Made by a program: the position numbers and the translations under genes. Positions 35,987 to 54,432 of a stretch of 64,000 nt of DNA are shown piece by piece. Within the stretch, counting starts at the first letter, position 1, and each line of letters opens with the position of its first letter. The notes under the pieces are model-generated. The model searched no databases. It worked only from the letters and a program-made list of their open reading frames with translations, and was not told where the DNA came from. Source of the stretch: Hyaloraphidium curvatum SAG 235-1 (lineage: Eukaryota; Fungi; Monoblepharomycota); assembly GCA_025558095.1 (NCBI GenBank), contig JAIVFI010000029.1:434001-498000 (forward strand), read 5' to 3'.

Positions 35987-36634
35987 NNNNNNNNNNNNNN
36001 NNNNNNNNNNNNNNNNNNNNNNNNNNNNNNNNNNNNNNNNNNNNNNNNNNNNNNNNNNNNNNNNNNNNNNNNNNNNNNNNNNNNNNNNNNNNNNNNNNNN
36101 NNNNNNNNNNNNNNNNNNNNNNNNNNNNNNNNNNNNNNNNNNNNNNNNNNNNNNNNNNNNNNNNNNNNNNNNNNNNNNNNNNNNNNNNNNNNNNNNNNNN
36201 NNNNNNNNNNNNNNNNNNNNNNNNNNNNNNNNNNNNNNNNNNNNNNNNNNNNNNNNNNNNNNNNNNNNNNNNNNNNNNNNNNNNNNNNNNNNNNNNNNNN
36301 NNNNNNNNNNNNNNNNNNNNNNNNNNNNNNNNNNNNNNNNNNNNNNNNNNNNNNNNNNNNNNNNNNNNNNNNNNNNNNNNNNNNNNNNNNNNNNNNNNNN
36401 NNNNNNNNNNNNNNNNNNNNNNNNNNNNNNNNNNNNNNNNNNNNNNNNNNNNNNNNNNNNNNNNNNNNNNNNNNNNNNNNNNNNNNNNNNNNNNNNNNNN
36501 NNNNNNNNNNNNNNNNNNNNNNNNNNNNNNNNNNNNNNNNNNNNNNNNNNNNNNNNNNNNNNNNNNNNNNNNNNNNNNNNNNNNNNNNNNNNNNNNNNNN
36601 NNNNNNNNNNNNNNNNNNNNNNNNNNNNNNNNNN
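35987..36634. other. Assembly gap (N run)
   Basis: 648 N bases. Confidence 1.
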
Positions 36635-41094: not shown

Positions 41095-43191
41095 GGTGTA
41101 AATGTCGTCGATGAAGACCACCAAGCAGTACCACTGGAGGCCGGCGAGGAGCTCGTCCATGATCCGAGCAAAGGTTGCAGGAGCGTTGGTAAAGCCCATG
41201 GCCATCCGCTCCCACTGGTAGAGACCGCGGTGCGTCGTGAAGGCCGTCTTTTCCTTGTCCTCGTCGGCCACCTCCACGTGCCAAAAGCCGGAGCGGATGT
41301 CGCAAACGCTCCACACCTTGGCCGCGCTGAGGAGAGCGAGAGTGTCGCTTGGGTTCTTCATCGGGTAGACGTCGCGCTTGGTGGCGGCGTTGAGCTTCCG
41401 GTAATCGATCACCAGGCGCCATTCGCCCGAGCCGTGCCCTTTTGGCACCATGATGCAGGGCGTGGCCCAGGGGCTTCGCGAGGGGACGACTACGCCCTGC
41501 ACGAGCAGGTCGTCGATGATCTTGTCCATTTCCCCGCGAAGCCGGAACGGGGTCCGGTACGGCATCTGGTGGATCGGCTTGAGGTCGCCCGTGTCGATCC
41601 GGAAGCGATGGTTGCGCAGCTTGCCGATCCAAGGACCAAACACGTCCCGGTAGCGGTCGCAGAGCTTATGGAAACGAGGTTTGTCCCCCTCGCTCAGGAT
41701 CGTTTGGTCCATCTTGAGCTCGATAGCCTCGACCGGAGGAGGCTCCACGCCGGGAGGCTGAGGTGGTCCAATCGATCCCGGCGAGGGCACCGCGAACAGA
41801 TCGATGGTCTCCTCGACCGTGAGCGTGGATTCGGCCGGTTCGGTGTGGGGCAGCTCGGGCTCCAGCATCGAGATCTGCGCGGGAGCCAGATACGTGGGCG
41901 GTTCCGGAGCGAGAAATCCAGGAATCCGCACGCGGAAGCGGCCGAGGTGGGTGCCCGGGCCGATCGTGACCGGTGTCGTCCCGTAGTTGCGGATGAGAAT
42001 CGGCAGCCGACCGTCTCTGTCGGGCGTCGCCGACGGGATGATGAAGAGGCGATCGAACGGCGAAGTGTTCGGCGTCTCGATGACCCCTGTCAAGTCCATC
42101 TCCACGACGGTCGCCAAGGGAGTCGTCGGGGCCAGCTCAGCGGTGATCGAGACGTCCTCGTTGGGGTAGACCGTGATGGAGGTGGTTGAATGGAGCGGGG
42201 CGACCAGGTGTGATCCGAAGAGCGGTCGCGCAACAATGTGCATTGGCACGACGACCCCCTCCGGATCGTCCTTGAAATAGAGGACCGGCGTCTCCCAGTC
42301 CATCTGAACGCGTAGGGCGGAGAGCCAAGGGGTGCCGAGGATCACGTCGTCCATGAGACCGTCCATGATGGCGACGTCCATGACGCAGTGTTGATTCCCG
42401 ACCAGGATGTCCATCTTAGCAACTCCGCGGACCCACATGGTTCCGCCGGCCGCGGCCGTGCTGAGGGTGCCGAGTGTCCATGGTTTGATCGGTGGCGACG
42501 GGTGGATCCGGCAGAAGAAGGACGACCGAACCGCCACCACTGAGGCACCGGAGTCGACGAGGGCCGCGGGGGTATTCACGCCGTTGACCCATGCGGAAAC
42601 GCGTGCCGCCTGATAGTGGAACTGCACTTGCGAAGTCCACGTCCAGCGATCCGGCGGAGGGGCGACCGGAGCAGGTGGCCGCGGGCGAGGCCGAGGGCCA
42701 GGCAGCGGTGGTCGTGCGTAGGCGGAAGGAGGAGGGGGCCTTTCGAAAGGTCCGGGAACGGCGCGGACGGTCGGGCCCTCGTGCATAGGTGCATCCGCTG
42801 ATCCCGCGTCCGCATCCTGTGCCGCCGGTTCACCGTTTCCCACGACCTCGACCGAGCCGGGCGACGCCGAATCCGCTGCCGGCGGCGGGGCCAGGGTCTC
42901 GTCGATCGGCATGAGCGCCTCCCGCTGCTGACGAACGGCGGCCTGTCGAGCTGCCTCCGCCTCGAGGAAGAGGATGTACTCCGTGCCCCCGAAGGGCCAA
43001 TGATGAACGTGGTCCTCCGCCGTCGGTTCATCGGTCGCGGAATCCGACAACTCCGGCGATCCGCCAGGAGATGAAGGGTCCGTGCCGTCCGGCAGCGGGG
43101 AAGTTCCAGGAAGAGGTTCCACATGTGGTTCAAGAGCTTGGATCTCTGCCCCCCTATGGCCGTGCGGCACTGAGGGCAAAGCTAGTTTTTT
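41095..43191 (-). CDS. pol: pol 5' half: aspartic protease, dUTPase-like spacer, RT N-terminal part ending at FIDDIYT
   Basis: ALVDSGAS; SPWATP, WRLVIDYRKLN, DIRSGFWHV, KTAF, MAMGFTNAPATF, FIDD. Confidence 0.92.
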
Positions 43192-44837
43192 GGCATCGAA
43201 GGGGTGTTGCCGAGGCGAGACTTCCAGTTGAGTGGGCGGCGGTTGGCATTCTTCTCCAACTCCCAGCACTCGTCCTGAGCATGCCCATCCATGCCACAGA
43301 GATGGCAGTGGCGAGGCTGGAAGCGCTTCTGGTCGCGGTACTCCGAGGTGAAGGGCCGGCGATCCTGGCGCTCCTGCTGCTGGCGGGGCCGATCGATCGG
43401 AGGAGGCCTCGCGGGGGGGTTCGGCCTGGTCTCCGCGGCCTGAACCTGATGGCGAGGCGACGGCAGCAGCTTGGTGATGAGCTCCTTGATCTCGACGAGG
43501 TCGCTGTTCGGCCCCGAAGGCGGCAACGGCTGGCTCCGACGAGACTGGAAGGGGACGAAACGGCGCGGAGGCCGGAACGCAGACTCCCCCGGCGGTCCAC
43601 CGGTGGGCCTGCGCTCTCCCTTAGGCTCCAGCAGCTTTGTGAGAGCCTGCGTATGAGCCAGCAGCACTTCCGTCGTCGCCTTGTCGGTCGCCTTGGAGGA
43701 GCCCGAAGACGAGTGCTGGCCGACCAGAGCCGGAATCTCCGAAATCGAGTTCTGGCCCAGGAAACGGATGTCGCGCGGCTGCGCAGGGCCCGATGCTTGC
43801 ATGACGGTGCGCATCTTCTCGATGACCTTGGTGACGGAAGTGCGGTTGATGAGGTGATCCCCGAGGAGCTCCAGCGCCTTCCCGCGTAGCTCCGGGCGCA
43901 GTCCGTAGAGCAGGTTCTGGCCGTACACGCTGTCTTGCACTTCCCTGGTAGGAAGCTGATCGCCGCAGTGCGAGAGGAAACGCGTCTCGGCCAGGGATAC
44001 GCGGGCAACGAAGGCGTCGAGGGTCTCATCGTTGGTCATCTGAATCGTGTTGTAGTGCCGGCGATAATGCATCGATGCGTCGCGGGGCTCGAAGTGGTAG
44101 CGTAGCCAGGCAAGCACATCGTTCTGGGTCACCGGAGGATAGGTGGCCGTCGCGGGATAGTCCGGAGGGCGGTTCTGCGGCGTGATGTTGTGCCACATTG
44201 CGCGCGGCAGAGGCCCAAGGAAGACCGGGAAGACCTTGACGAGGTTGTTGATGGAGCCGAACGCCGTGAGAACCGTAGTGAGGTCGCGGAAGAAGTCTTC
44301 CGGGTCCTGCGTAGCGGGATCGAAGGGCTGAACAGAAGCAGGCAGCAGCTGAGCCGGGAGCTTGGCGGCTCCGCCCTGGCGATCCGCCTGGGGGAGGCCG
44401 GTGCTTCCATCGTTCGGCGGCTGAGCGCCAACGATGGCCCGTACGGCGTCGACGAACTGCTGCGGCTGGAGACCAGCGGCGGCAGCGTTGACAGCCGGGG
44501 CTTGCTCGCTCCGCTGACCCTGCTGCTGTGCGGCGAGCTGCTGGAGCTGCTGCGCTGCAAGCTGCTCGGCGGCGGCTTGCTGTTGAACTTGGGCAGCTGG
44601 CAACTGCTGAGCGGTCTGTTGCGCCACGAGCTGAGCGGCAAGCTGATCGGCGACGGCTTGCTGGGCGGCTTGCTGGGCGGCGAGTTGGGCGACGTCGTTG
44701 GCGGCGGCGCCGACTTGCTGGATCGCGGCCTGCGCAGCTTGGATAATCGCCTGGGCCTGCGGGTTGTTCTGCAAATCGTTAGCTTCCTGAGGCTGCTGAA
44801 CCTCCTGCTGAGGGGCGGCTTCTTGAACGGGGTCCAT
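43182..44837 (-). CDS. gag: Gag with Gln/Ala-rich N-terminus and CCHC zinc knuckle
   Basis: QMTNDETLDAFVARV, GLRPELR, CHLCGMDGHAQDEC. Confidence 0.88.
   Translation of the reverse strand: MDPVQEAAPQQEVQQPQEANDLQNNPQAQAIIQAAQAAIQQVGAAANDVAQLAAQQAAQQAVADQLAAQLVAQQTAQQLPAAQVQQQAAAEQLAAQQLQQLAAQQQGQRSEQAPAVNAAAAGLQPQQFVDAVRAIVGAQPPNDGSTGLPQADRQGGAAKLPAQLLPASVQPFDPATQDPEDFFRDLTTVLTAFGSINNLVKVFPVFLGPLPRAMWHNITPQNRPPDYPATATYPPVTQNDVLAWLRYHFEPRDASMHYRRHYNTIQMTNDETLDAFVARVSLAETRFLSHCGDQLPTREVQDSVYGQNLLYGLRPELRGKALELLGDHLINRTSVTKVIEKMRTVMQASGPAQPRDIRFLGQNSISEIPALVGQHSSSGSSKATDKATTEVLLAHTQALTKLLEPKGERRPTGGPPGESAFRPPRRFVPFQSRRSQPLPPSGPNSDLVEIKELITKLLPSPRHQVQAAETRPNPPARPPPIDRPRQQQERQDRRPFTSEYRDQKRFQPRHCHLCGMDGHAQDECWELEKNANRRPLNWKSRLGNTPSMPKN
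43185..43191 (-). promoter_or_regulatory. -1 ribosomal frameshift slippery heptamer A AAA AAC (gag-pol)
   Basis: CCA AAA AAC TAG ends gag; pol lies in the -1 frame (..DAKKLA..). Confidence 0.8.
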
Positions 44838-44992
44838 GTTTGGCGAAGGGGAATGAACTTGGTTGACGGAATACGGTTGACAGAAAAGAGTGGCAGTCGA
44901 CAAGCGCCGGTGCCAGGCGAAGTTGTTTTTGGATTATCGAAGTCGAAACTGAAGTCGAACGAGGTGTCGAAGACCCGAGAGCAGGATCACGG

Positions 44993-45004: not shown

Positions 45005-45480
45005 TGCGACGGTCCGGGTCGGAACCGGGCCTGAAGCTCTAACCCGGCGCGCGAATCCCGCTCGGCTCTTCGGGTCGGATAGGCCCTGAATATGAATAAG
45101 CGAACAGCGCTGAAGATACTTGACTGTAGCCGGGGGAAAGAGGTTACGGGATGTCTCCCGGGGTGCGTCCCAAGGGCTCTCAGAACGAGGATCCGGCCGG
45201 GCGGGGTTCCGCACGGTGGTCGAACGACACGGAGAGCACGTAGAGTCAACTGGCGATCAAGATTGTACTGTTACATGTCCCGCTCTTTATATATCCCAGG
45301 AGGGTGGCTGTGCCGAGTCACTTGCGAGTCGCTCGCGAGTCGCTCGCGAGTGACTCGCGAGTCACTCGCGAGTCGATCGCGAGTCGATCACGAGTCGATC
45401 GCGAGGACCGACGCCTCCACGCCTCCGAACCGAAAATGAAAATACCCTTGTCCGAATGTCAGACGTCCTGTACCTTCGCA
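45005..45480 (-). repeat. 5' LTR (476 bp)
   Basis: Starts TGCGAAGGT and ends ACCGTCGCA (8/9 inverted match, TG...CA); contains a CTCGCGAG tandem array (45314-45405) and TATATAAAG (~45285-45293). Confidence 0.8.
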
Positions 45481-45582
45481 GGACGGCCGCGTGACTGCCG
45501 GCCGAGACCCACGCGGCGCCGGCAAAAACGCGATCAGCGCGAGGAGCGCGAACAGGAGGACGGTGAGGCGGCGGGGAGCCAT
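45481..45582 (-). pseudogene. Truncated secreted peptide gene copy (exon 1 only), cut by the LTR
   Basis: Matches 46897-46998; homology stops exactly at the LTR TG. Confidence 0.8.
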
Positions 45583-46025
45583 CGCGGTTTAGGTGTCGTT
45601 TGCGGGGGTGTGCAGGTTCGGTCCGAGCGGCGAGGCCTTGTCGGGCCGAATGCTGCGGGCTGGAGATGACGGACGTAGTAGTCACCAGTCCCTGAACTAG
45701 AGAGGTTCTACCGACGCTCGAAACTGTTTATCGGTTACACAAAGTGTGTCAGGGTAGACTGCCGGCTCCGATCGGAGCGTGATTGGAGCCATTTGGTGTT
45801 CCCCGACGTCGCCAGGTGGCCTGCCAAGGGACCTTAATTGCCGCTTCCCGTTTCAGTCAGGGCACGGCGTCGGGACGGTCCATCAAGCATCTGACGCGGC
45901 GACAGCACGTAACAAAACAAGCAGGCGTCCTTTCGTCGGTCGACGCTGCGCTTCTGTATGGAAGCCCGCAGAAACACCGGTCGCGAAAACTCTCGGGCTC
46001 CCCGTCCACCTTTGCAACATCCCGT

Positions 46026-46371
46026 TTACACCGGCACACGGCGCTCCAGCCCCTTGTCTGCCTCGTAGATGCAGCTGACCATGCCGTCGACCGCGCCGAC
46101 GCCTGCGGTGGCGCGAGTGAGTGACTCGCCGGAGTCGGTGCGGGCGCCGGAACGAACAGCGCTCGCCCTCGACGCACTCGGCGCACGAGGATCTCTTGAC
46201 GATCCGGGCGTCCCCGGTGGGGGCGGCGTTGCTGTGGGAGGGGGCCGGGCGAGTCAGGGGACGTTGAGGGATCGCTGTGGCGCGCCACGGCGGGACCCAC
46301 GCGGCGCCGGCGAAGAGCGCGATCAGCGCGAAGAGCGCGAAAAGGAGGACGGTGAAGCGGCGGGGGGCCAT
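46026..46371 (-). CDS. Secreted 4-Cys prepropeptide, copy A1 (3 exons, 73 aa)
   Basis: Spliced: MAPRRFTVLLFALFALIALFAGAANAAPTGDARIVKR-SSCAECVEGERCVGAVDGMVSCIYEADKGLERRVPV; GT-AG introns of 69 and 55 nt; 222+124=346 nt. Confidence 0.85.
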
Positions 46372-46648
46372 GGCGGCGCTTGGCTGCGGAAGGCAATTTG
46401 GAGTCTCTGGGGGATGGGGAGGCTGGTGTCGAAGGGTCACAGGTCCCTGACCGAACAAGTGCCCCGACCCTCCAATCTTCTTCCGCGTCAGTCAAGAGAT
46501 GGTGTGGGCGACAAAGTTAAGGAAAGGCGACATGTTGGACCCCGGCTTTACATTGGAACCCTCTGTAAGCACTCTTTGAGATAACTGTTGAAAGCCAACG
46601 CTTGGGAAACAGCGCTTGAAGCTCCGCATAACCTCTGCACCCTCTTGT

Positions 46649-46998
46649 TTATACCGGCGTGCGGCGCTCCAGCCCCGTGTCGGCCTCGTAGATACAGCTG
46701 ACCATACCGTCGACCGCGGCGACGCCTGCGGGCGGGTTACCGCGTGAGGGGCCCGCGAGAACCGGTGCGGGTCAAGGAACCCACAGCGCTCGCCCTCGAC
46801 GCACTCGGCGCACGAAGACCTTTTGACGATGCGGACGTCCGGGGCGGGGGCGGCGGTGCTGTGGTTGGGCAGGGTGTGTGGCGTCAGGAGCATGAGGGAC
46901 GGCCGCGTGACTGCCGGCCGAGACCCACGCGGCGCCGGCAAAAACGCGATCAGCGCGAGGAGCGCGAACAGGAGGACGGTGAGGCGGCGGGGAGCCAT
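46649..46998 (-). CDS. Secreted 4-Cys prepropeptide, copy B (1-nt deletion in exon 1)
   Basis: Core SSCAECVEGERCVAAVDGMVSCIYEADTGLERRTPV; the frame is restored only if the 70-nt intron 1 is retained. Confidence 0.7.
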
Positions 46999-47441
46999 CG
47001 CGGTTTAGGTGTCGTTTGCGGGGGTGTGCAGGTTCGGTCCGAGCGGCGAGGCCTTGTCGGGCCGAATGCTGCGGGCTGGAGATGACGGACGTAGTAGTCA
47101 CCAGTCCCTGAACTAGAGAGGTTCTACCGACGCTCGAAACTGTTTATCGGTTACACAAAGTGTGTCAGGGTAGACTGCCGGCTCCGATCGGAGCGTGATT
47201 GGAGCCATTTGGTGTTCCCCGACGTCGCCAGGTGGCCTGCCAAGGGACCTTAATTGCCGCTTCCCGTTTCAGTCAGGGCACGGCGTCGGGACGGTCCATC
47301 AAGCATCTGACGCGGCGACAGCACGTAACAAAACAAGCAGGCGTCCTTTCGTCGGTCGACGCTGCGCTTCTGTATGGAAGCCCGCAGAAACACCGGTCGC
47401 GAAAACTCTCGGGCTCCCCGTCCACCTTTGCAACATCCCGT

Positions 47442-47787
47442 TTACACCGGCACACGGCGCTCCAGCCCCTTGTCTGCCTCGTAGATGCAGCTGACCATGC
47501 CGTCGACCGCGCCGACGCCTGCGGTGGCGCGAGTGAGTGACTCGCCGGAGTCGGTGCGGGCGCCGGAACGAACAGCGCTCGCCCTCGACGCACTCGGCGC
47601 ACGAGGATCTCTTGACGATCCGGGCGTCCCCGGTGGGGGCGGCGTTGCTGTGGGAGGGGGCCGGGCGAGTCAGGGGACGTTGAGGGATCGCTGTGGCGCG
47701 CCACGGCGGGACCCACGCGGCGCCGGCGAAGAGCGCGATCAGCGCGAAGAGCGCGAAAAGGAGGACGGTGAAGCGGCGGGGGGCCAT
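47442..47787 (-). CDS. Secreted 4-Cys prepropeptide, copy A2 (same as A1)
   Basis: Duplicate of A1 at +1416. Confidence 0.85.
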
Positions 47788-48063
47788 GGCGGCGCTTGGC
47801 TGCGGAAGGCAATTTGGAGTCTCTGGGGGATGGGGAGGCTGGTGTCGAAGGGTCACAGGTCCCTGACCGAACAAGTGCCCCGACCCTCCAATCTTCTTCC
47901 GCGTCAGTCAAGAGATGGTGTGGGCGACAAAGTTAAGGAAAGGCGACATTTGGACCCCGGCTTTACATTGGAACCCTCTGTAAGCACTCTTTGAGATAAC
48001 TGTTGAAAGCCAACGCTTGGGAAACAGCGCTTGAAGCTCCGCATAACCTCTGCACCCTCTTGT

Positions 48064-48409
48064 TTATACCGGCGTGCGGCGCTCCAGCCCCGTGTCGGCC
48101 TCGTAGATACAGCTGACCATGCCGTCGACCGCGCCGACGCCTGCGGTGGCGCGGGTCAGTGACTCGCCAGAGTCGGTGCGGGCGCCGGAACGAACAGCGC
48201 TCGCCCTCGACGCACTCGGCGCACGAGGATCTCTTGACGATCCCGGCGTCCCCGGTGGGGGCGGCGTTGCTGTGGGATGGGGCCAGGCGAGTCAGGGGAC
48301 GTTGAGGGATCACTGTGGCGCGCCACCGCGGGACCCACGCAGCGCCGGCGAAGAGCGCAATGAGCGCGAAGAGCGCGAAGAGCAGGATAGTAAGGCGGCG
48401 GGGGGGCAT
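48064..48409 (-). CDS. Secreted 4-Cys prepropeptide, copy C
   Basis: MPPRRLTILLFALFALIALFAGAANAAPTGDAGIVKR-SSCAECVEGERCVGAVDGMVSCIYEADTGLERRTPV. Confidence 0.85.
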
Positions 48410-48953
48410 GGCGGTGATTGGGTGTCTTTTGCGGCGGAGTGGGGGTTCGACCGATAGTAAGTGTGTCTTCGGGCCGAAACTGTGGGCTGGACAAAGGGAC
48501 GGCCGGCCCACAAGCGAATATTACGTCGACACAAACTGGACGATGATTGTCAGGTTCGGGCTGCCAGCTCCAATCGGAGGGAGATGACTGGTGTCTCCGA
48601 GCGCTGGATAGTCGCTGTGGGGTCGTGGCTGGCCTAGGGACGCATCCTGACGGAGTCGGTCAAGCACCGAAGTGGGCGATTGAAAGCACATTTCCACGAG
48701 TCTACACTGCTTCCTGAAACATTCGTGGCAACAAGGCTTGAGACCAGCGCTTGAAGCATCCTCCCCGTTCGCAGCATCCCGTTCCAGGTCGGGGCACGGC
48801 AGCAGAACTGTCCATCAAGGCGCTGATGCGGGCGACATCATGGAGTTAAACAGAGCAGGCGTCCTTTTCGGTCGACGCCGCGCTGCTGTATTGATGTGAA
48901 AACCCCACAGTCGGAGCAATTGACCTCTCCGTCCACCCTTCCCAACCCGTTGT

Positions 48954-49317
48954 TTACACCGGCGGCGCACGGCGGTCCAGCTTGTTTTCGGCCTCGTAGA
49001 TGCAGCTGACCATGCCGTCGACCGCGCCCACGCCTACGGGGGGGTGGCCGTGTGAGCCGCCCGGAAGCCCGGTCCGGCCATCTCGCAACTTACAGCGCTC
49101 GCCCTCGACACACTCGGCGCAAGACGACCTCTTCACGACGTGGACCTTGTCGGTGGGGGCGGCGGTGCTGCGGCGGCGGACGGGGCGGCGTGGCGCGTGA
49201 GCGGCGGCGGGGCAACTAGGCGGACCGCCCGCCTGGCGGGACCCACGCGGCGCCGGCGAAGACCGCGACGAGCGCAAAGAGCGCGAGGAGGAGGAGCGCG
49301 AGGCGGCGGGTGGCCAT
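48954..49317 (-). CDS. Secreted 4-Cys prepropeptide, copy D
   Basis: MATRRLALLLLALFALVAVFAGAATAAPTDKVHVVKR-SSCAECVEGERCVGAVDGMVSCIYEAENKLDRRAPPV; intron 2 donor is a canonical GTAAGT. Confidence 0.85.
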
Positions 49318-49557
49318 GGCGTGAGTGTTCTCGGCGGTGCGGGTGAGTGATTGGACGGTGTCAATAGTCGGCGTGGCTGGGGAGGGACTTCCGAACGTCG
49401 ATGGGATAGTGGGGGCGGACGGAGTCACCGGCCGGCCACACAGAAAGGGCCGATTCGGTTACTGCAGCTGGGCGGGCAGATCATTGATTCTCATAGATCA
49501 AGTCATGGCCAGCTCCGACCCTCGTCATCGCCGTTGCGACGTCGGCCCCGGGGGCAG

Positions 49558-52500
49558 TCACCCCTCCTGGGAAGCCTCCCCCGCCCATCCGGCCATCCAA
49601 CCCCCCATCTCGTCCCAGTGTTCCCCCTTGGTGTACTCGTGCAGCCCTAGCATCCCCTTGAGCCTCAGCATCACGTACTGCCGCGCCATGTACCACGTGT
49701 CGAGCGCGAACGCACATTCCTCCTTCCCCTTGGACCCCTTTTCCCGCAGCCGTCCCGAGAGGTCCGCGTCCGAGGGTACCTGGCAATCCGGCAGCCCGCG
49801 GTGAGGACGGAGCACCCTCGCCGTCGCACCGGCCGGGAACTCCGGGTCCCCCGCCGCGGCGTAGAACAGCGGCCCCCGGGTCGGCAGGGGATGCGGGAAC
49901 GAGAGCGCGCTCATCATCTGCCCCGTGGCCGACTCGAGCGGCCCGGCGATCTCGCCGTTGTTGTCCCACGCGAGGTCGTGCCGCGGGTGCAGTAGCGCGG
50001 AGCCTTCCGGGCACGCGGCCAAGGGCGGGGCGCCAGCGCGGCCGGTCCCGTTCGCGCAGGCCGGCTGGTAATCCCGCAGCGCGAGGTCAGCACCGGGGTG
50101 CTCCACCAGCAGCCCCACGGACCGCAGCGCCTCGACCACCATCCCCCCAGCCGCCCGCGAAAAAACCCACGGCGCCTCCTCCGCGAACGTGCCCCCGCAC
50201 ACTCCACTTGGCATCCACGCGTCCGTCACGATCCGCTTCTCCGGCACCCCGGCGCGGAGCAAGGCCGTCCGCAGACCGGCGATGTTGTACCCGTCCATCC
50301 CGTTGGCCACCGACCCCGTCAGCCACAGGGGGGGCACCGCCTGCTTCCCGCGGAGCTCCGGCATCCCCAGCCGCCCCCGCTCCGGTCCGAGCGCCGCGAC
50401 GACCTCCTCTTCCAGCCGCGCCGCGCACGCCCTGTCCTCCCTCAGGCTCGCCCCGCCCTCTTGCACAAGCGTGGCGTTCAGATCGGGCACGGCCATCTGG
50501 AGCACCGCCGCGTCCACCCGCATCCTGCGCACCACCACCCCCGAGAACCTCGACCCGCTCGACAGGCCGAACGAGAGCACCGGCACGCGCTGCCCGGCCG
50601 CCAGCCCGCGCGCGCGCCGCACGTGGGCCAGCGCCGCGGCGGCCGAGACCGCGGTGACGCGCAGGTCGAAGTTGCCGCAGCTGTCCTCCAGGTCCTGGTG
50701 CGCGCACTTGCTGTCGTCCAGCAGCCCCAGCGGCACCGCGACCGGCATCAACCCCCTCCTCTCTAGCGCGCGGATCAGCCCGCGGAGCAGGGGCATCCGC
50801 GAGGCGAACGCGGGCCCGTTGCACGCCGTGCCGAAAACCAGCGCAACCCCGACCGCGCGCTCGGGGGGCAGCGCGATCGAGACCCAGGGTGCGATCCCCG
50901 ACACGTTGCGGCCGTCCCGCGAGGTCAAGTTGAACCCCGGCTCCAGCGCCCGCAGCGCGTGCACGGGCTCCCCCGGCGTCGGGGTCCACGCGTCCCCGCC
51001 GGCTTCGGGGGGCAGGCACTCGTCGATCCCCTTGACCACCTTCGGCAGCCCCATCCTGTCGTGCGGCGGAACCGGCGCCGTAGCATTGCACCCCGCCACC
51101 CTCCCCGCATGCTCCCCGCACGCGGCCCAGAGCATCCACGCCGTCCCGCCCCGCGCCTCGGTCCCCCTGTCCCCCGGCACGGGCAACCGCCTGTAATGCA
51201 GCCCCGCGTAGTGCGCCAGCTGGAGGTAGTACCACCCCGCGGCCTCGTGCCCCGCCGGCACCGTTTCCGCGAGCGCCGAGCCCGCGCGCATGGCCAGCGC
51301 GTTGAGGAGGCCGGAGCCGTGCGGGGCGAGGACGGCGGAGGAGGAGGCGAAGAGGGCGAGGGAGGCGCGGACGCTCAGGTTGCCCGGGAACGGGATCGGA
51401 TCGAGGGCGTAGGACCGGAGGAGGAGGGAGAGGGCGGCGAGTTCGGAGGGGGGTTGGCCCCGCGAGGAGGCGGCGGAGCGGTCGACGAGGATCACCCTGT
51501 TTGCGCGGCCGGGGTGTTCGACGTCGATCTCGGGGGCGAGGGAGCGCATGGCGTCGCGGAGGGCGAGCAGGTGCACGGGGTGCGTGCGCGCGCCCACGAG
51601 CGGCTTGTCCAGCAAATGGGCAGTGCGCGCGGCGACGCGGCCCGAGACGAGGCGGTCCGCGAGGCCGAGGTGCGCGAGCCATTCCACGGCGTAGGGCAGG
51701 GTGTCGTTGTTGCCGGGCGCCCAGCGGCGGGCAAAGTGGCGCGGGACGTGCACCAGAACGCCGGGGTTGGCTTTGAGGTACGGCACGAGAGGGTATATGC
51801 GGCCGACGAAATCGGCCGAGAACCAGTAGTAGTTGTCGGCCGGGGGCACGACCACCACGACCTCGTCCAGCACGTGCAGCCTCACCGGCCCAGTGCCTGA
51901 GGCATTCAGGGCCTCCCTGTCCCAGGCCATCACCGCCTCATGCGGTTCCGGCGTGTCGTCGTCGTGGGGCATCACCAGCTGCGAGACGAAGGTGCAACCG
52001 CCGCCGGGAGGGGGGTACGGGACCTCGGCGAGGTCGGGGCCGGCGTAGGGAGGCCAGAAGTGGACGAAGCGGCCGTCGGGGGCGCGCCGGCGGAGGTCAC
52101 GCAGCGGCTCGGGGCCGCCCATGGCTGATTCCAGGTGGCGTTCTGTCCGATCCGGCGACACGTTGCGGGCGGCCTCGGGTTCCGGGTCGAACAGCTCGAC
52201 AAGCACCCCCTCGTACCCCTCGGCTGTCCCGCGCCGGGCCCGGTTGGGCCTCACGGCCTGCAGCATGCCGTTGGGGTTCACCACCACGCCGTGCGCTGTG
52301 AGCACGCCCGGCAGCGCGTGGGCAAACGCGGGGGCGTTGAGCGCCGCGCGCACGGCGGCGGGGTCGTTGCGCCCCGCGGCGTCCGCCACCTCCTTCGTGC
52401 GCACGTTCATGACCATCAACGCGGGGTCGATTGGCGGCACGGGCACCTGGCGCAGCACGGCCTGGCGGGTGACGCCGGGCAGGGAGAGGTCGGCGGTAGC

Positions 52501-53079
52501 TCCGTGCAGGCTCGGTGCGGCGGCGAGGGCCCGCACGTTATTGGACATGCGGTCGGCGACCTCGGAGCGGCGCAGCGGCACGTCGCAGGGCACATTTTGG
52601 AGGAGCGTCTCCCACAGTTCGCCCGGCGGCGTGCGGTCGCAGCGGCGGACGACCGACAGCGATTGCAAAGGCGGCGGCGTCCAGGGGCCGCCCGACGCGT
52701 CCAGATTGAGGGCGTCCGCGATCGCCGCCACCGACACCGCGGCCACGTCTGCCGGCAGCGGCCCCCGCCCCGCCTCGGCCGCTGTCCGCAGTGCGTCCCA
52801 TTCGGCGCTCTCCGCGACAACGTCGAACGCGTCCGCCCAGTCCAGCGGCGCCAGCGTGACGAGAGATCCTTTAAAATTCGCGGCATCGGAGAGCGCGAAC
52901 GGCCTCAACGCCTCGCGCACGGCAAACAGAGCAGGGGAACGGGATCCCGCCTTGGCGGCCGCAGATGTCCACGCCGACAGCGGCACGCGAACCTCGTCGT
53001 GCCGCCGCGCCGCTGCAATGGCGAGCACTAAAAGCGCAACGGCCGCCGCCGTCCACCGCACAGCGAACCGGGGGCGCAT
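49558..53079 (-). CDS. Type II membrane protein: GT61 (DUF563) glycosyltransferase fused to an alpha/beta-hydrolase-like domain
   Basis: N-terminal TM anchor; NYYWF..DF...I, VILVDRS, ALFASSSAVLAPHGSGLLNALAM...AETVP...YYLQLAHYAGLHY (GT61 pattern); C-terminal SFGLSSGS nucleophile elbow, DAW, LHEY; single open frame. Confidence 0.8.
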   Translation of the reverse strand: MRPRFAVRWTAAAVALLVLAIAAARRHDEVRVPLSAWTSAAAKAGSRSPALFAVREALRPFALSDAANFKGSLVTLAPLDWADAFDVVAESAEWDALRTAAEAGRGPLPADVAAVSVAAIADALNLDASGGPWTPPPLQSLSVVRRCDRTPPGELWETLLQNVPCDVPLRRSEVADRMSNNVRALAAAPSLHGATADLSLPGVTRQAVLRQVPVPPIDPALMVMNVRTKEVADAAGRNDPAAVRAALNAPAFAHALPGVLTAHGVVVNPNGMLQAVRPNRARRGTAEGYEGVLVELFDPEPEAARNVSPDRTERHLESAMGGPEPLRDLRRRAPDGRFVHFWPPYAGPDLAEVPYPPPGGGCTFVSQLVMPHDDDTPEPHEAVMAWDREALNASGTGPVRLHVLDEVVVVVPPADNYYWFSADFVGRIYPLVPYLKANPGVLVHVPRHFARRWAPGNNDTLPYAVEWLAHLGLADRLVSGRVAARTAHLLDKPLVGARTHPVHLLALRDAMRSLAPEIDVEHPGRANRVILVDRSAASSRGQPPSELAALSLLLRSYALDPIPFPGNLSVRASLALFASSSAVLAPHGSGLLNALAMRAGSALAETVPAGHEAAGWYYLQLAHYAGLHYRRLPVPGDRGTEARGGTAWMLWAACGEHAGRVAGCNATAPVPPHDRMGLPKVVKGIDECLPPEAGGDAWTPTPGEPVHALRALEPGFNLTSRDGRNVSGIAPWVSIALPPERAVGVALVFGTACNGPAFASRMPLLRGLIRALERRGLMPVAVPLGLLDDSKCAHQDLEDSCGNFDLRVTAVSAAAALAHVRRARGLAAGQRVPVLSFGLSSGSRFSGVVVRRMRVDAAVLQMAVPDLNATLVQEGGASLREDRACAARLEEEVVAALGPERGRLGMPELRGKQAVPPLWLTGSVANGMDGYNIAGLRTALLRAGVPEKRIVTDAWMPSGVCGGTFAEEAPWVFSRAAGGMVVEALRSVGLLVEHPGADLALRDYQPACANGTGRAGAPPLAACPEGSALLHPRHDLAWDNNGEIAGPLESATGQMMSALSFPHPLPTRGPLFYAAAGDPEFPAGATARVLRPHRGLPDCQVPSDADLSGRLREKGSKGKEECAFALDTWYMARQYVMLRLKGMLGLHEYTKGEHWDEMGGWMAGWAGEASQEG

Positions 53080-53305
53080 GGCCCGTGCGGGGCACCGGCC
53101 GTGCACGAGTCACGCGTCGCCCGTTGCCACAAGACACAAGACACCCTTCTCCGAACGGGTCAGTGAGGTGGTCACACGCAAGCGAACGTAAGTCATTCCT
53201 CCACATGTCCTACAACTTCTTCCAAAATAGATACATGGAACAGTGGGCTGGCGTCGCCCGCATCCGGTCGCCGAGCACACGCCTTTGGCACCCCTCCTTG
53301 ACCCC

Positions 53306-53681
53306 TCAAACGGCCCTCCTCTCCAGCGCCACCCTGTCCTCGTAGATGCAACTGACCATCCCGTCGACCGCGGCCACGCCTGTTCGGGTTCCGGGTAGCG
53401 TGTGAGTGGGTGTCCACTGAGTGGGTGTCCACCGTGCGCGGGGAAGGAAGGGGGACCCACAGCGTTCGCCCTCGACGCACTCGGCGCACGAGGACCGCTT
53501 GACGATCTGGACTTCGCCCGTGGGGGCGGCGGTGCTGTGGGCGTGGGGCGACGGTGGAGAGGGAGGGGTGAGTGGCGTTGGGGATAGCGTTGACCCGGGC
53601 GGGGGGAACGCACGCGGCGCCGGCGAACAGCGCAAACAGCGCGAGCAGCGCGAACAGGAGGACGGCGAGGCGGGGGGCCAT
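53306..53681 (-). CDS. Secreted 4-Cys prepropeptide, copy E
   Basis: MAPRLAVLLFALLALFALFAGAATAAPTGEVQIVKR-SSCAECVEGERCVAAVDGMVSCIYEDRVALERRAV. Confidence 0.85.
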
Positions 53682-54100
53682 CTTCGGTGGTGATTCGCGC
53701 GGGGTGCAGGTGGGTGGGGGATGTCTTGGGGACCGAAGGGGGACGGCTGACGTAAAAGCCGTCGGTCCGAGGAGGGGCGTTTTGGCGACGGCCAAGGGAG
53801 GAGATGGCGGCATCGGGTGGCGGAGCATCCTGGATTGCCTGAACTGGATGGAGGTCCCTGGGCGGGGCGCGGGCCTCGTTTTTCCCCGGCGGCCGCGGAT
53901 CCCCGAGCCGGCCCAGCACCCGTCTGGAGATCGACCTCGCGGGCCATCGTCGATCCGTTCATGGCCGTGCAATCCCTCCAATAGCCCGTGTAGTTCCCCC
54001 CACCGGCTCGCCCTCCAAAAGATATGGCGCCAACCCACTCTTTCCACCCCGGGACTTCCCCGTCCCTTGCCGACGCCGCGGCGTCCCGCCCCGCCATCCC

Positions 54101-54432
54101 TCACACCGCGTTCCCCCTCCTCTCCAGCGCCCTCTCGTAAACGCAGCTGACCATCCCGTCCACGGCTGCCTCGCCTGCACGTTCCCCGCGGGGATCAGCC
54201 GACCGGTGCTCCAGGGGCGAGAAGAGCGACCCACATCGCTCGCCCTCGAGGCACTCGGCGCACGACGACCGCTTGACGATGCTGCCTTCCGCGGTGGGGG
54301 CGGCGGTGCTAGCGAGCGGGGTGAGCGGCGCCGGGACCGCGACCGCCCAGCAGAGGGAGGGACCCACGCGGCGCCGGCGAGCAGGGCCAACAGCGCGAGC
54401 AGCGCGACGAGGAGGAGGGTAACGCGTGCCAT
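54101..54432 (-). CDS. Secreted 4-Cys prepropeptide, copy F
   Basis: MARVTLLLVALLALLALLAGAATAAPTAEGSIVKR-SSCAECLEGERCEAAVDGMVSCVYERALERRGNAV. Confidence 0.85.

Follow-up and report, generated by a model that had tools for sequence, protein, structure and literature searches.

What do the small genes of a tandem array in the genome of the fungus Hyaloraphidium curvatum produce, and does the large enzyme gene lodged among them take part in making it? The window analyzed here is a stretch of 64,000 nucleotides (nt) of the 31.9-Mb H. curvatum assembly (positions 434001 to 498000 of contig C29), in which the array occupies positions 45481 to 54432. An earlier note, made from the sequence alone, had described seven complete genes and one truncated gene of three exons each, coding for secreted four-cysteine peptides, and had read the GT61 glycosyltransferase-hydrolase gene between them as part of a glycopeptide system resembling those of peptides that are made by ribosomes and modified after translation (RiPPs). 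Our analysis bore out the seven complete genes and the truncated one, all of which lie on the minus strand; it did not bear out the pathway. The array probably consists of cargo-less members of a large family of secreted H. curvatum proteins, from which the free N-terminal module would be exported, with the GT61 gene as a chance neighbor.

The array core and a module shared by many secreted proteins of H. curvatum

Exon models derived from conserved splice signals gave the array genes a common structure (a slash marks an exon end). Exon 1 (65 to 71 nt) encodes a Met and a hydrophobic signal peptide and ends in phase 2 at GC/GTGGGT (GTGCGT in copy G). Exon 2, which is 74 nt long in every copy, encodes (N/T)AAP, I/V-V-K-R, and SSCAEC(V/L)EGER and supplies the T of a split Cys codon; exon 3 (74 to 80 nt) continues with GC, (V/E)(G/A)AVDGMVSC(I/V)YE, a short variable stretch, and L-(E/D)-R-R, followed by 2 to 4 residues. 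Intron 1 measures 59 to 79 nt and intron 2 measures 55 to 81 nt. The models place intron 2 within the third Cys codon (T/GC) in every copy, exactly as the earlier note had stated, and the products are 70 to 74 amino acids long.

Searches for relatives used the spliced public products P0001, P0003, and P0004 as queries and otherwise single exons or uninterrupted read-through references. Within the organism's own genome, exon-wise and widened profiles revealed 16 loci beyond the array, on contigs C36 (three), C45, C5 (two), C2 (three), C34, C12 (two), C4, C13, C16, and C15. The loci that were read share one plan: a signal peptide, a short variable stretch, F/Y-x-R, SC(A/S)(E/D)C....(F/Y)C, EF.YPGAP...VACV, L-Y-(R/K)-R-Y, and a long C-terminal domain, which varies between the genes. 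The common part is an N-terminal module of about 50 amino acids and of two-disulfide size, SC..C....FCEF.YPGAP...VACV....LYRR/Y, the slash here standing before the last Tyr. When the module profile was run against 1.84 billion representative proteins, it produced 77 matches at an E value of ≤0.001, about 73 of which are true and carry the module at residues ~20 to 100, immediately behind the signal peptide; repeat proteins with no relation to these account for the remaining four. Every one of 20 sampled module matches was an H. curvatum "hypothetical protein." In an alignment of 62 sequences, C16, C19, and C35 were invariant, and C25, the Glu after C25, L43, R45, R46, and the Tyr of the closing motif were conserved in at least 90%. 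The cargos that follow the module span 2 to 486 residues and mostly contain an even number of cysteines. Pfam recognized NHL, Stig1, PAN, and EGF domains among them and gave no match for most.

The window branch differs from this plan in that it has no EF.YP insertion, carries LERR in place of LYRRY, and reaches a stop 2 to 4 residues past the RR. It is not the only one of its kind, as other module-only proteins exist (e.g., P0038). The relative on contig C45 opens with a window-type IVKR-SSCAEC start and continues after LYRR with two knottin-like six-Cys units, and by combining this start with a cargo, it links the window branch to the cargo-bearing majority. The array core thus reads as a shortened version of the ~50-residue module and not as an orphan peptide. 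The earlier note had rightly seen a secreted, two-disulfide-sized peptide in the core; it had missed that this core is a truncated copy of a module common to about 70 larger secreted proteins, which changes the likely identity of the "mature peptide."

The earlier note had also failed to recognize the peptide family, and our searches agree with it. When the peptides and three cargo regions were scanned against Pfam, no significant match emerged, and the module has no Pfam family; the fold searches reported below were likewise blank. A word-based search of 5.8 billion proteins with the read-through reference of copy H returned only four H. curvatum proteins, and our search of the literature on Hyaloraphidium secreted peptides found no paper. 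As judged from these comparisons, the large secreted-protein family has so far been seen only in H. curvatum.

Several features of the unlinked relatives were recorded in passing. The C45 gene (~82.4 to 82.8 kb) sits between two copies of a ~100-nt repeat that are ~1.1 kb apart, and no signal-peptide exon was found upstream of it. The intron at the third Cys interrupts the codon as T/GC in the window branch and in the C45 gene and as TG/C in most other members; in the C13 gene it lies one base past the Cys codon, and the C15 gene lacks it. This variation looks like sliding or loss of an intron at one site. On C36, three family members (at ~516.6, 515.9, and 524.7 kb), two of them head to head, fall within 9 kb, and small family clusters therefore also occur elsewhere in the genome.

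Selection on the core and transcription of the array

The public annotation lists copies B and D (P0003), C (P0004), F (P0002), and H (P0001) as "hypothetical protein." Copy B lies at 46026 to 46371 (exons 46301 to 46371, 46158 to 46231, and 46026 to 46102) and encodes the 73-residue product P0003; copy D (47442 to 47787) is its duplicate. Copy C, at 46649 to 46998 (exons 46929 to 46998, 46785 to 46858, and 46649 to 46725), corresponds to the public model P0004. Copy E (48064 to 48409) is chimeric: its 5′ part resembles copy B (introns 94 to 95% identical), and its tail and 3′-untranslated region (UTR) are 100% identical to those of copy C. Copy F spans 48954 to 49317 (exons 49247 to 49317, 49094 to 49167, and 48954 to 49033; public P0002), copy G spans 53306 to 53681 (exons 53614 to 53681, 53461 to 53534, and 53306 to 53379), and copy H spans 54101 to 54432 (exons 54368 to 54432, 54235 to 54308, and 54101 to 54174), with the 70-residue public product P0001.

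A 1416-bp tandem duplication produced the pairs A+B and C+D, and copies B and D are near-identical. Copy A (45481 to 45582) is truncated to exon 1 (45513 to 45582) and the first 32 nt of intron 1; it equals copy C in sequence as far as 45481 (repeat family D6, 100% identity to 46897 to 47196), beyond which there is unrelated repeat-bearing sequence. Copy C has suffered a 1-nt deletion in exon 1, and canonical splicing disrupts its frame, so that it stays open only through retention of intron 1 or use of an alternative donor. Its public model of 96 residues retains intron 1, and a GT four bases further on would likewise restore the frame; the public model of copy F, with 94 residues, retains intron 2. 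Six of the array copies have intact reading frames. We read the tandem array as young and still undergoing rearrangement.

Units of 11 bp that contain the palindrome CTCGCGAG form an array (45300 to 45420) that directly adjoins the point at which copy A is cut off and has a gag-like open reading frame (43182 to 44903) as its neighbor. The window revealed no second long terminal repeat to match the sequence by which copy A is truncated, though a run of N at 35987 to 36634 may hide one.

Codons were compared among copies B, C, E, F, G, and H and an unlinked ninth copy on contig C36. Over the 13 core codons of exon 2 (KRSSCAECVEGER), any two copies differed by at most five synonymous and by zero or one nonsynonymous changes. 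Over the 11 codons preceding KR, the pairs differed by three to eight nonsynonymous and by zero to two synonymous changes, except for the near-identical pair B/E, which showed a single nonsynonymous change. With B/E set aside, identity between the divergent copies amounted to 49 to 67% in the introns and 45 to 68% in introns plus flanks, which is close to background, and to 78 to 98% in exon 2 and the core of exon 3. These counts point to purifying selection on the array core, with divergence of the introns, of the stretch before KR, and of the tails. The earlier note, which had described a near-invariant core with synonymous changes amid diverging introns, leaders, and tails, was correct on this point.

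Evidence for transcription came from the only public run that covers the locus (X1), which is available in contig form under the label "RNA?". Its contigs skip introns bounded by CT..AC, equivalent to GT..AG on the minus strand, and in this respect the run behaves as RNA. Intron 2 of copies G (53380 to 53460) and H (54175 to 54234) is present as the contig joints 53378>53460 and 54173>54234. Loose contig ends at 49247, 53534/53614, and 54308, in copies F, G, and H, bear sequence of the neighboring exon and thereby prove intron 1 of all three. The junctions of run X1 coincide exactly with the predicted ones for both introns of G and H and for intron 1 of F. Another joint (49024>49093, with eight replaced letters and 90 to 95% likeness) belongs to a spliced transcript that encodes ..ERC-EATVDGM.. 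and matches no assembled copy exactly. It suggests a further paralogue or an allele missing from the assembly; since it reads as another paralogue and not as copy F, intron 2 of F is not directly shown.

The contig depth, a rough and poor measure of expression, was ~10,000 (k-mer) for exon 1 and the 5′-UTR of copy F, 231 for copy G, 180 for copy H, and 7 to 49 for the GT61 gene, which sets the peptide genes and the GT61 gene one to two orders of magnitude apart. Given the quality of this measure, our conclusion goes no further than strong transcription of the peptide genes and some transcription of the GT61 gene. A 681-nt contig (52787 to 53460, depth 231) extends from the spliced exons of copy G across the 3′ region of this copy and a spacer of 227 nt and takes in ~290 nt at the start of the GT61 coding sequence. 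This contig may represent an overlap of the 3′-UTR of copy G with the start of the GT61 gene, or read-through transcription.

Predicted fold and processing of the module

The structure prediction proposed in the earlier note was done with AlphaFold2 on residues 25 to 73 of P0003 and the 62-sequence alignment. The model had a mean predicted local distance difference test (pLDDT) score of 71 and a score of 80 to 85 in the core. It contains three short strands (R-I-V-K-R, E-R-C-V, and M-V-S-C-I) and a flexible tail of low confidence around LERR, and the prediction for the module is a small sheet of three strands that holds two disulfides. No known fold matched the model: a Foldseek search against PDB gave a best E value of 2.2, a search of the ESM Atlas gave no match, and a wide VIA-align comparison with 48,161 PDB chains gave a best Z score of 2.6 and nothing significant. 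Defensins reached Z scores of 2.0 to 2.2, and no solved structure of the defensin or knottin type matched the module significantly.

Secreted prepropeptides with KR and RR sites of the convertase type had been proposed in the earlier note, and both the motif fit and the encoded enzymes support this proposal. The extended Kex2 motif comprises an aliphatic residue at P4, any residue at P3, Lys or Arg as the preferred residues at P2, and Arg at P1 (PMC8528282). Both flanking sites of the module, IVKR and L-x-R-R, match it. The genome encodes kexin-type convertases; it contains eleven P-domain matches, the best of them in an open frame together with Peptidase_S8. We rate L-x-R-R as the likelier cut, because it is nearly invariant, lies at the boundary between module and cargo, and is flexible in the model.

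On this basis, we propose that the precursor would enter the endoplasmic reticulum (ER), where the module would fold and oxidize, and that a kexin-type convertase would cut after L-x-R-R. In the large relatives this cut would free the cargo; in the window copies it would merely trim the tail. With less certainty, a second cut might follow IVKR. The array would in this way export large amounts of free module of ~31 to 50 residues. As the module is kept by purifying selection, it probably has an extracellular role of its own. We further suggest, tentatively and as one possibility among several, that ~70 secreted proteins share in the module a structured leader domain of a new kind, released by a convertase, and that in the array this leader has become an abundant free peptide with an extracellular activity of its own (e.g., cell-cell signaling, antimicrobial action, or binding to cell surfaces). 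Such an arrangement would be similar to toxin-precursor superfamilies, but here the conserved part would be the product.

Several observations weigh against the export of a free, processed module by cargo-less genes. Processing is read here from motifs alone. Conservation of the Tyr at P1′ and of the Tyr at P3 of LYRRY goes beyond the requirements of a protease site, and the motif could be structural or a binding site. Asp at P3 is unfavorable for Kex2 (PMC8528282), and copy F has it (LDRR). The IVKR site may stay uncut, because Lys or Arg occupies P2 in only ~55% of the family and because RIVKR lies within a strand of the model. A blastx comparison of the sequence downstream of the window copies with the family proteins detected no remnant of a lost cargo (all E values >0.09), and we therefore infer cargo loss from the distribution of the family only. 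Finally, the contig that joins copy G to the GT61 gene leaves some transcriptional coupling possible, and a single RNA data set in contig form can show neither coregulation nor its absence.

The conservation of LYRRY beyond the needs of a protease is also what gives the best surviving alternative its appeal. The module might be a permanent N-terminal docking or binding domain, like the small cysteine-containing modules of the dockerin type, by which secreted proteins of diverse kinds are tethered to one partner, for example the cell wall or a receptor. In that case the window peptides would act as free modules, competing for this partner or regulating it. In favor of this reading, the module is a conserved domain, predicted to fold, that has further motifs besides the basic pair (F-x-R-SC, EF.YPGAP, VACV, and LYRRY) and is joined to unrelated cargos. 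We nevertheless consider it rather unlikely, as a near-invariant dibasic pair with an aliphatic P4 residue stands exactly at the boundary between module and cargo, the tail of the model is flexible, the fold searches gave no dockerin-like or lectin-like match, and no partner is known.

The GT61-hydrolase gene inside the array

The large gene between copies F and G (49558 to 53079, minus strand) is a single exon with one open frame of 1173 codons for a protein composed of an N-terminal membrane anchor, a GT61 domain, and an alpha/beta-hydrolase-like half. It starts 227 nt downstream of copy G and ends 240 nt upstream of copy F, on the same strand as the array. The only homologues of the fusion found were three H. 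curvatum paralogues and one metagenomic protein; a search with the whole fusion retrieved two of the paralogues and the metagenomic protein only, and the GT61 domain alone as a query retrieved nothing at an E value of ≤0.001 and thus no close named relatives. The GT61 assignment of the earlier note is supported by Pfam, which matches PF04577 in all four homologues (best E value of 7.6e-14); in the window protein, the domain lies at residues ~458 to 602 and scores 27 bits, equal to the gathering cutoff of 27. The serine-hydrolase-like domain claimed for the C-terminal half is likely, if unproven. In its favor, GLSSG at residues 838 to 842 is invariant in the four homologues and fits the G-x-S-x-G pattern of a nucleophile elbow, and the ten best neighbors by ESM features were all alpha/beta-hydrolase clusters (scores of 0.95 to 0.96). 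On the other side, this half drew no match in Pfam, a PDB sequence search by the fusion profile returned nothing, and the AlphaFold2 model of this half (pLDDT of 43) was unusable.

Does this enzyme belong with the peptides? The earlier note had suggested that it tailors them and had proposed linkage between module and GT61 genes as a test, which we ran inside the H. curvatum genome. The genome contains at least 23 GT61 loci, four full-length fusions and ~19 others. The three fusions outside the window lie at 302 to 333 kb of contig C2 and share 82 to 87% DNA identity among themselves. No module gene was found near any of them or near the ~19 other GT61 loci, and no GT61 locus was found within 100 kb of the other 16 mapped module loci. 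With at least 23 GT61 loci counted and 17 module loci mapped, the window array is the one case in which the two co-localize. By our own arithmetic, with 23 GT61 genes, 60 to 75 module genes, and 31.9 Mb, ~0.4 adjacencies within 5 kb are expected by chance, and a single one is therefore unremarkable. The 5.6-kb contig of the metagenomic homologue contains no module gene, although its flanks are short.

The setting of the C2 paralogues differs from that of the array gene. At 292000 to 343000 of that contig, they stand amid duplicated polysaccharide pyruvyl-transferase-like and core-2/I-branching (GT14) genes, which makes the neighborhood a candidate glycan-synthesis gene cluster. In a search around them for small tandem gene arrays, no repeats turned up but the paralogues and stretches of ~0.3 to 1.2 kb, two of which overlap pyruvyl-transferase-like and GT14-like genes. 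Around the window array, no other candidate tailoring gene was found; the closest genes that could be recognized belong to a retroelement, to an AMP-binding enzyme (at ~15 kb), and to a Zn-cluster factor (at ~30 kb). A scan of the genome for PF11807 (UstYa/DUF3328) was silent, as were the scans of control genomes.

It is therefore very unlikely that the array and the embedded enzyme form a glycopeptide or RiPP-like pathway, in which the GT61-hydrolase would tailor the released four-Cys peptide in the secretory pathway. The position of the gene inside the array and on its strand, the transcript contig that bridges copy G and the 5′ end of the GT61 gene, the type II-like membrane anchor, which would turn the catalytic part toward the lumen, and the Ser residues in the array core all speak for such a pathway. 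Against it stand the sole co-localization in the genome, of a kind for which chance accounts readily, the three full-length paralogues in a glycan-gene cluster free of module genes, the metagenomic contig, the single core per precursor, and the silent PF11807 scan, to be read with the equally silent controls. The array core also presumably lacks the EGF context for addition of O-linked N-acetylglucosamine (O-GlcNAc), which we counted against glycosylation. With no recurrent GT61 linkage and one core in each precursor, the proposed pathway link is unsupported, and the linkage test failed at all loci but the array. Most likely, the GT61-hydrolase gene is an unrelated glycan-synthesis gene that came to lie inside the array by chance.

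That the array consists merely of decaying, functionless fragments of larger family members is the least credible reading, and a very unlikely one: the truncation of copy A, the frameshift in copy C, the recent duplications and chimeric copy beside a retroelement, and the absence of a cargo would fit it, but core divergence is synonymous-only across the old copies F, G, and H and the unlinked C36 copy, six copies keep intact frames, and splicing is correct at very high transcript depth.

Relation to known systems and significance

Secreted fungal proteins with a Kex2-processed pro-domain (K2PP) consist of a signal peptide, an N-terminal pro-region that ends in KR, RR, or LxxR, and the mature protein; their pro-domains are short, disordered, and not conserved between effectors, and a role in folding has been proposed for them (PMC8528282). 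The H. curvatum family resembles them in that the region after its signal peptide ends in L-x-(R/K)-R in at least 90% of 62 modules and in that the genome encodes a kexin-type convertase. It differs in that this region is a conserved, cysteine-bonded module, predicted to fold into three strands (pLDDT of 80 to 85) and common to ~70 proteins, of which the window copies retain the module only. H. curvatum, moreover, is a free-living aquatic saprotroph and not a plant pathogen.

Secreted precursors with Kex2-type sites bounding the peptides and with an amplified peptide-coding unit likewise occur among the KEPs (Kex2-processed repeat proteins) and the fungal RiPPs, ustiloxin for example, and in KEPs the core is repeated within one polypeptide (PMC7329392, PMC6339444). 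In the array, amplification occurred by tandem gene duplication with one core per gene, and no UstYa-type or other recognized tailoring enzyme was found to recur with the module family. Membership among the KEPs, which have at least three dibasic-flanked repeats per protein, was rejected, as each array protein contains one unit; a dikaritin- or ustiloxin-type RiPP precursor was rejected as well, given a single core per precursor instead of several repeats separated by Kex2 sites.

The large gene shares with the GT61 family, which includes EOGT and the plant xylan arabinosyl- and xylosyltransferases, a PF04577 match and an anchor of the type found in Golgi and ER glycosyltransferases. Its match, however, falls exactly at the gathering score (27 bits), and it is fused to an alpha/beta-hydrolase-like half of ~480 residues.

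Conotoxin-type precursors combine a conserved signal and pro-region and a basic processing site with hypervariable, cysteine-rich C-terminal products in large lineage-specific expansions. Their pro-region is not known to have a conserved disulfide fold, and the product is, as far as is known, invariably the C-terminal part. In the module family, the conserved part appears to be itself a disulfide domain, able to stand alone.

In zoosporic fungi, as in other early-diverging ones, hardly any work has explored secreted peptides or how they are processed. Our analysis delineates, within one species, an unannotated gene family with roughly 70 or more members, in which a disulfide module stands between the signal peptide and a convertase-type site and is followed by many different cargos, and one highly expressed branch of this family is the module alone. 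It also removes a tempting but unsupported annotation of the locus as a "glycosylated RiPP cluster." If the module is indeed cleaved, it would be a folded, shared pro-domain, unlike the disordered pro-domains of fungal effectors, and it could aid the expression of fungal proteins rich in cysteine. A free module that proved bioactive would represent a new class of peptides.

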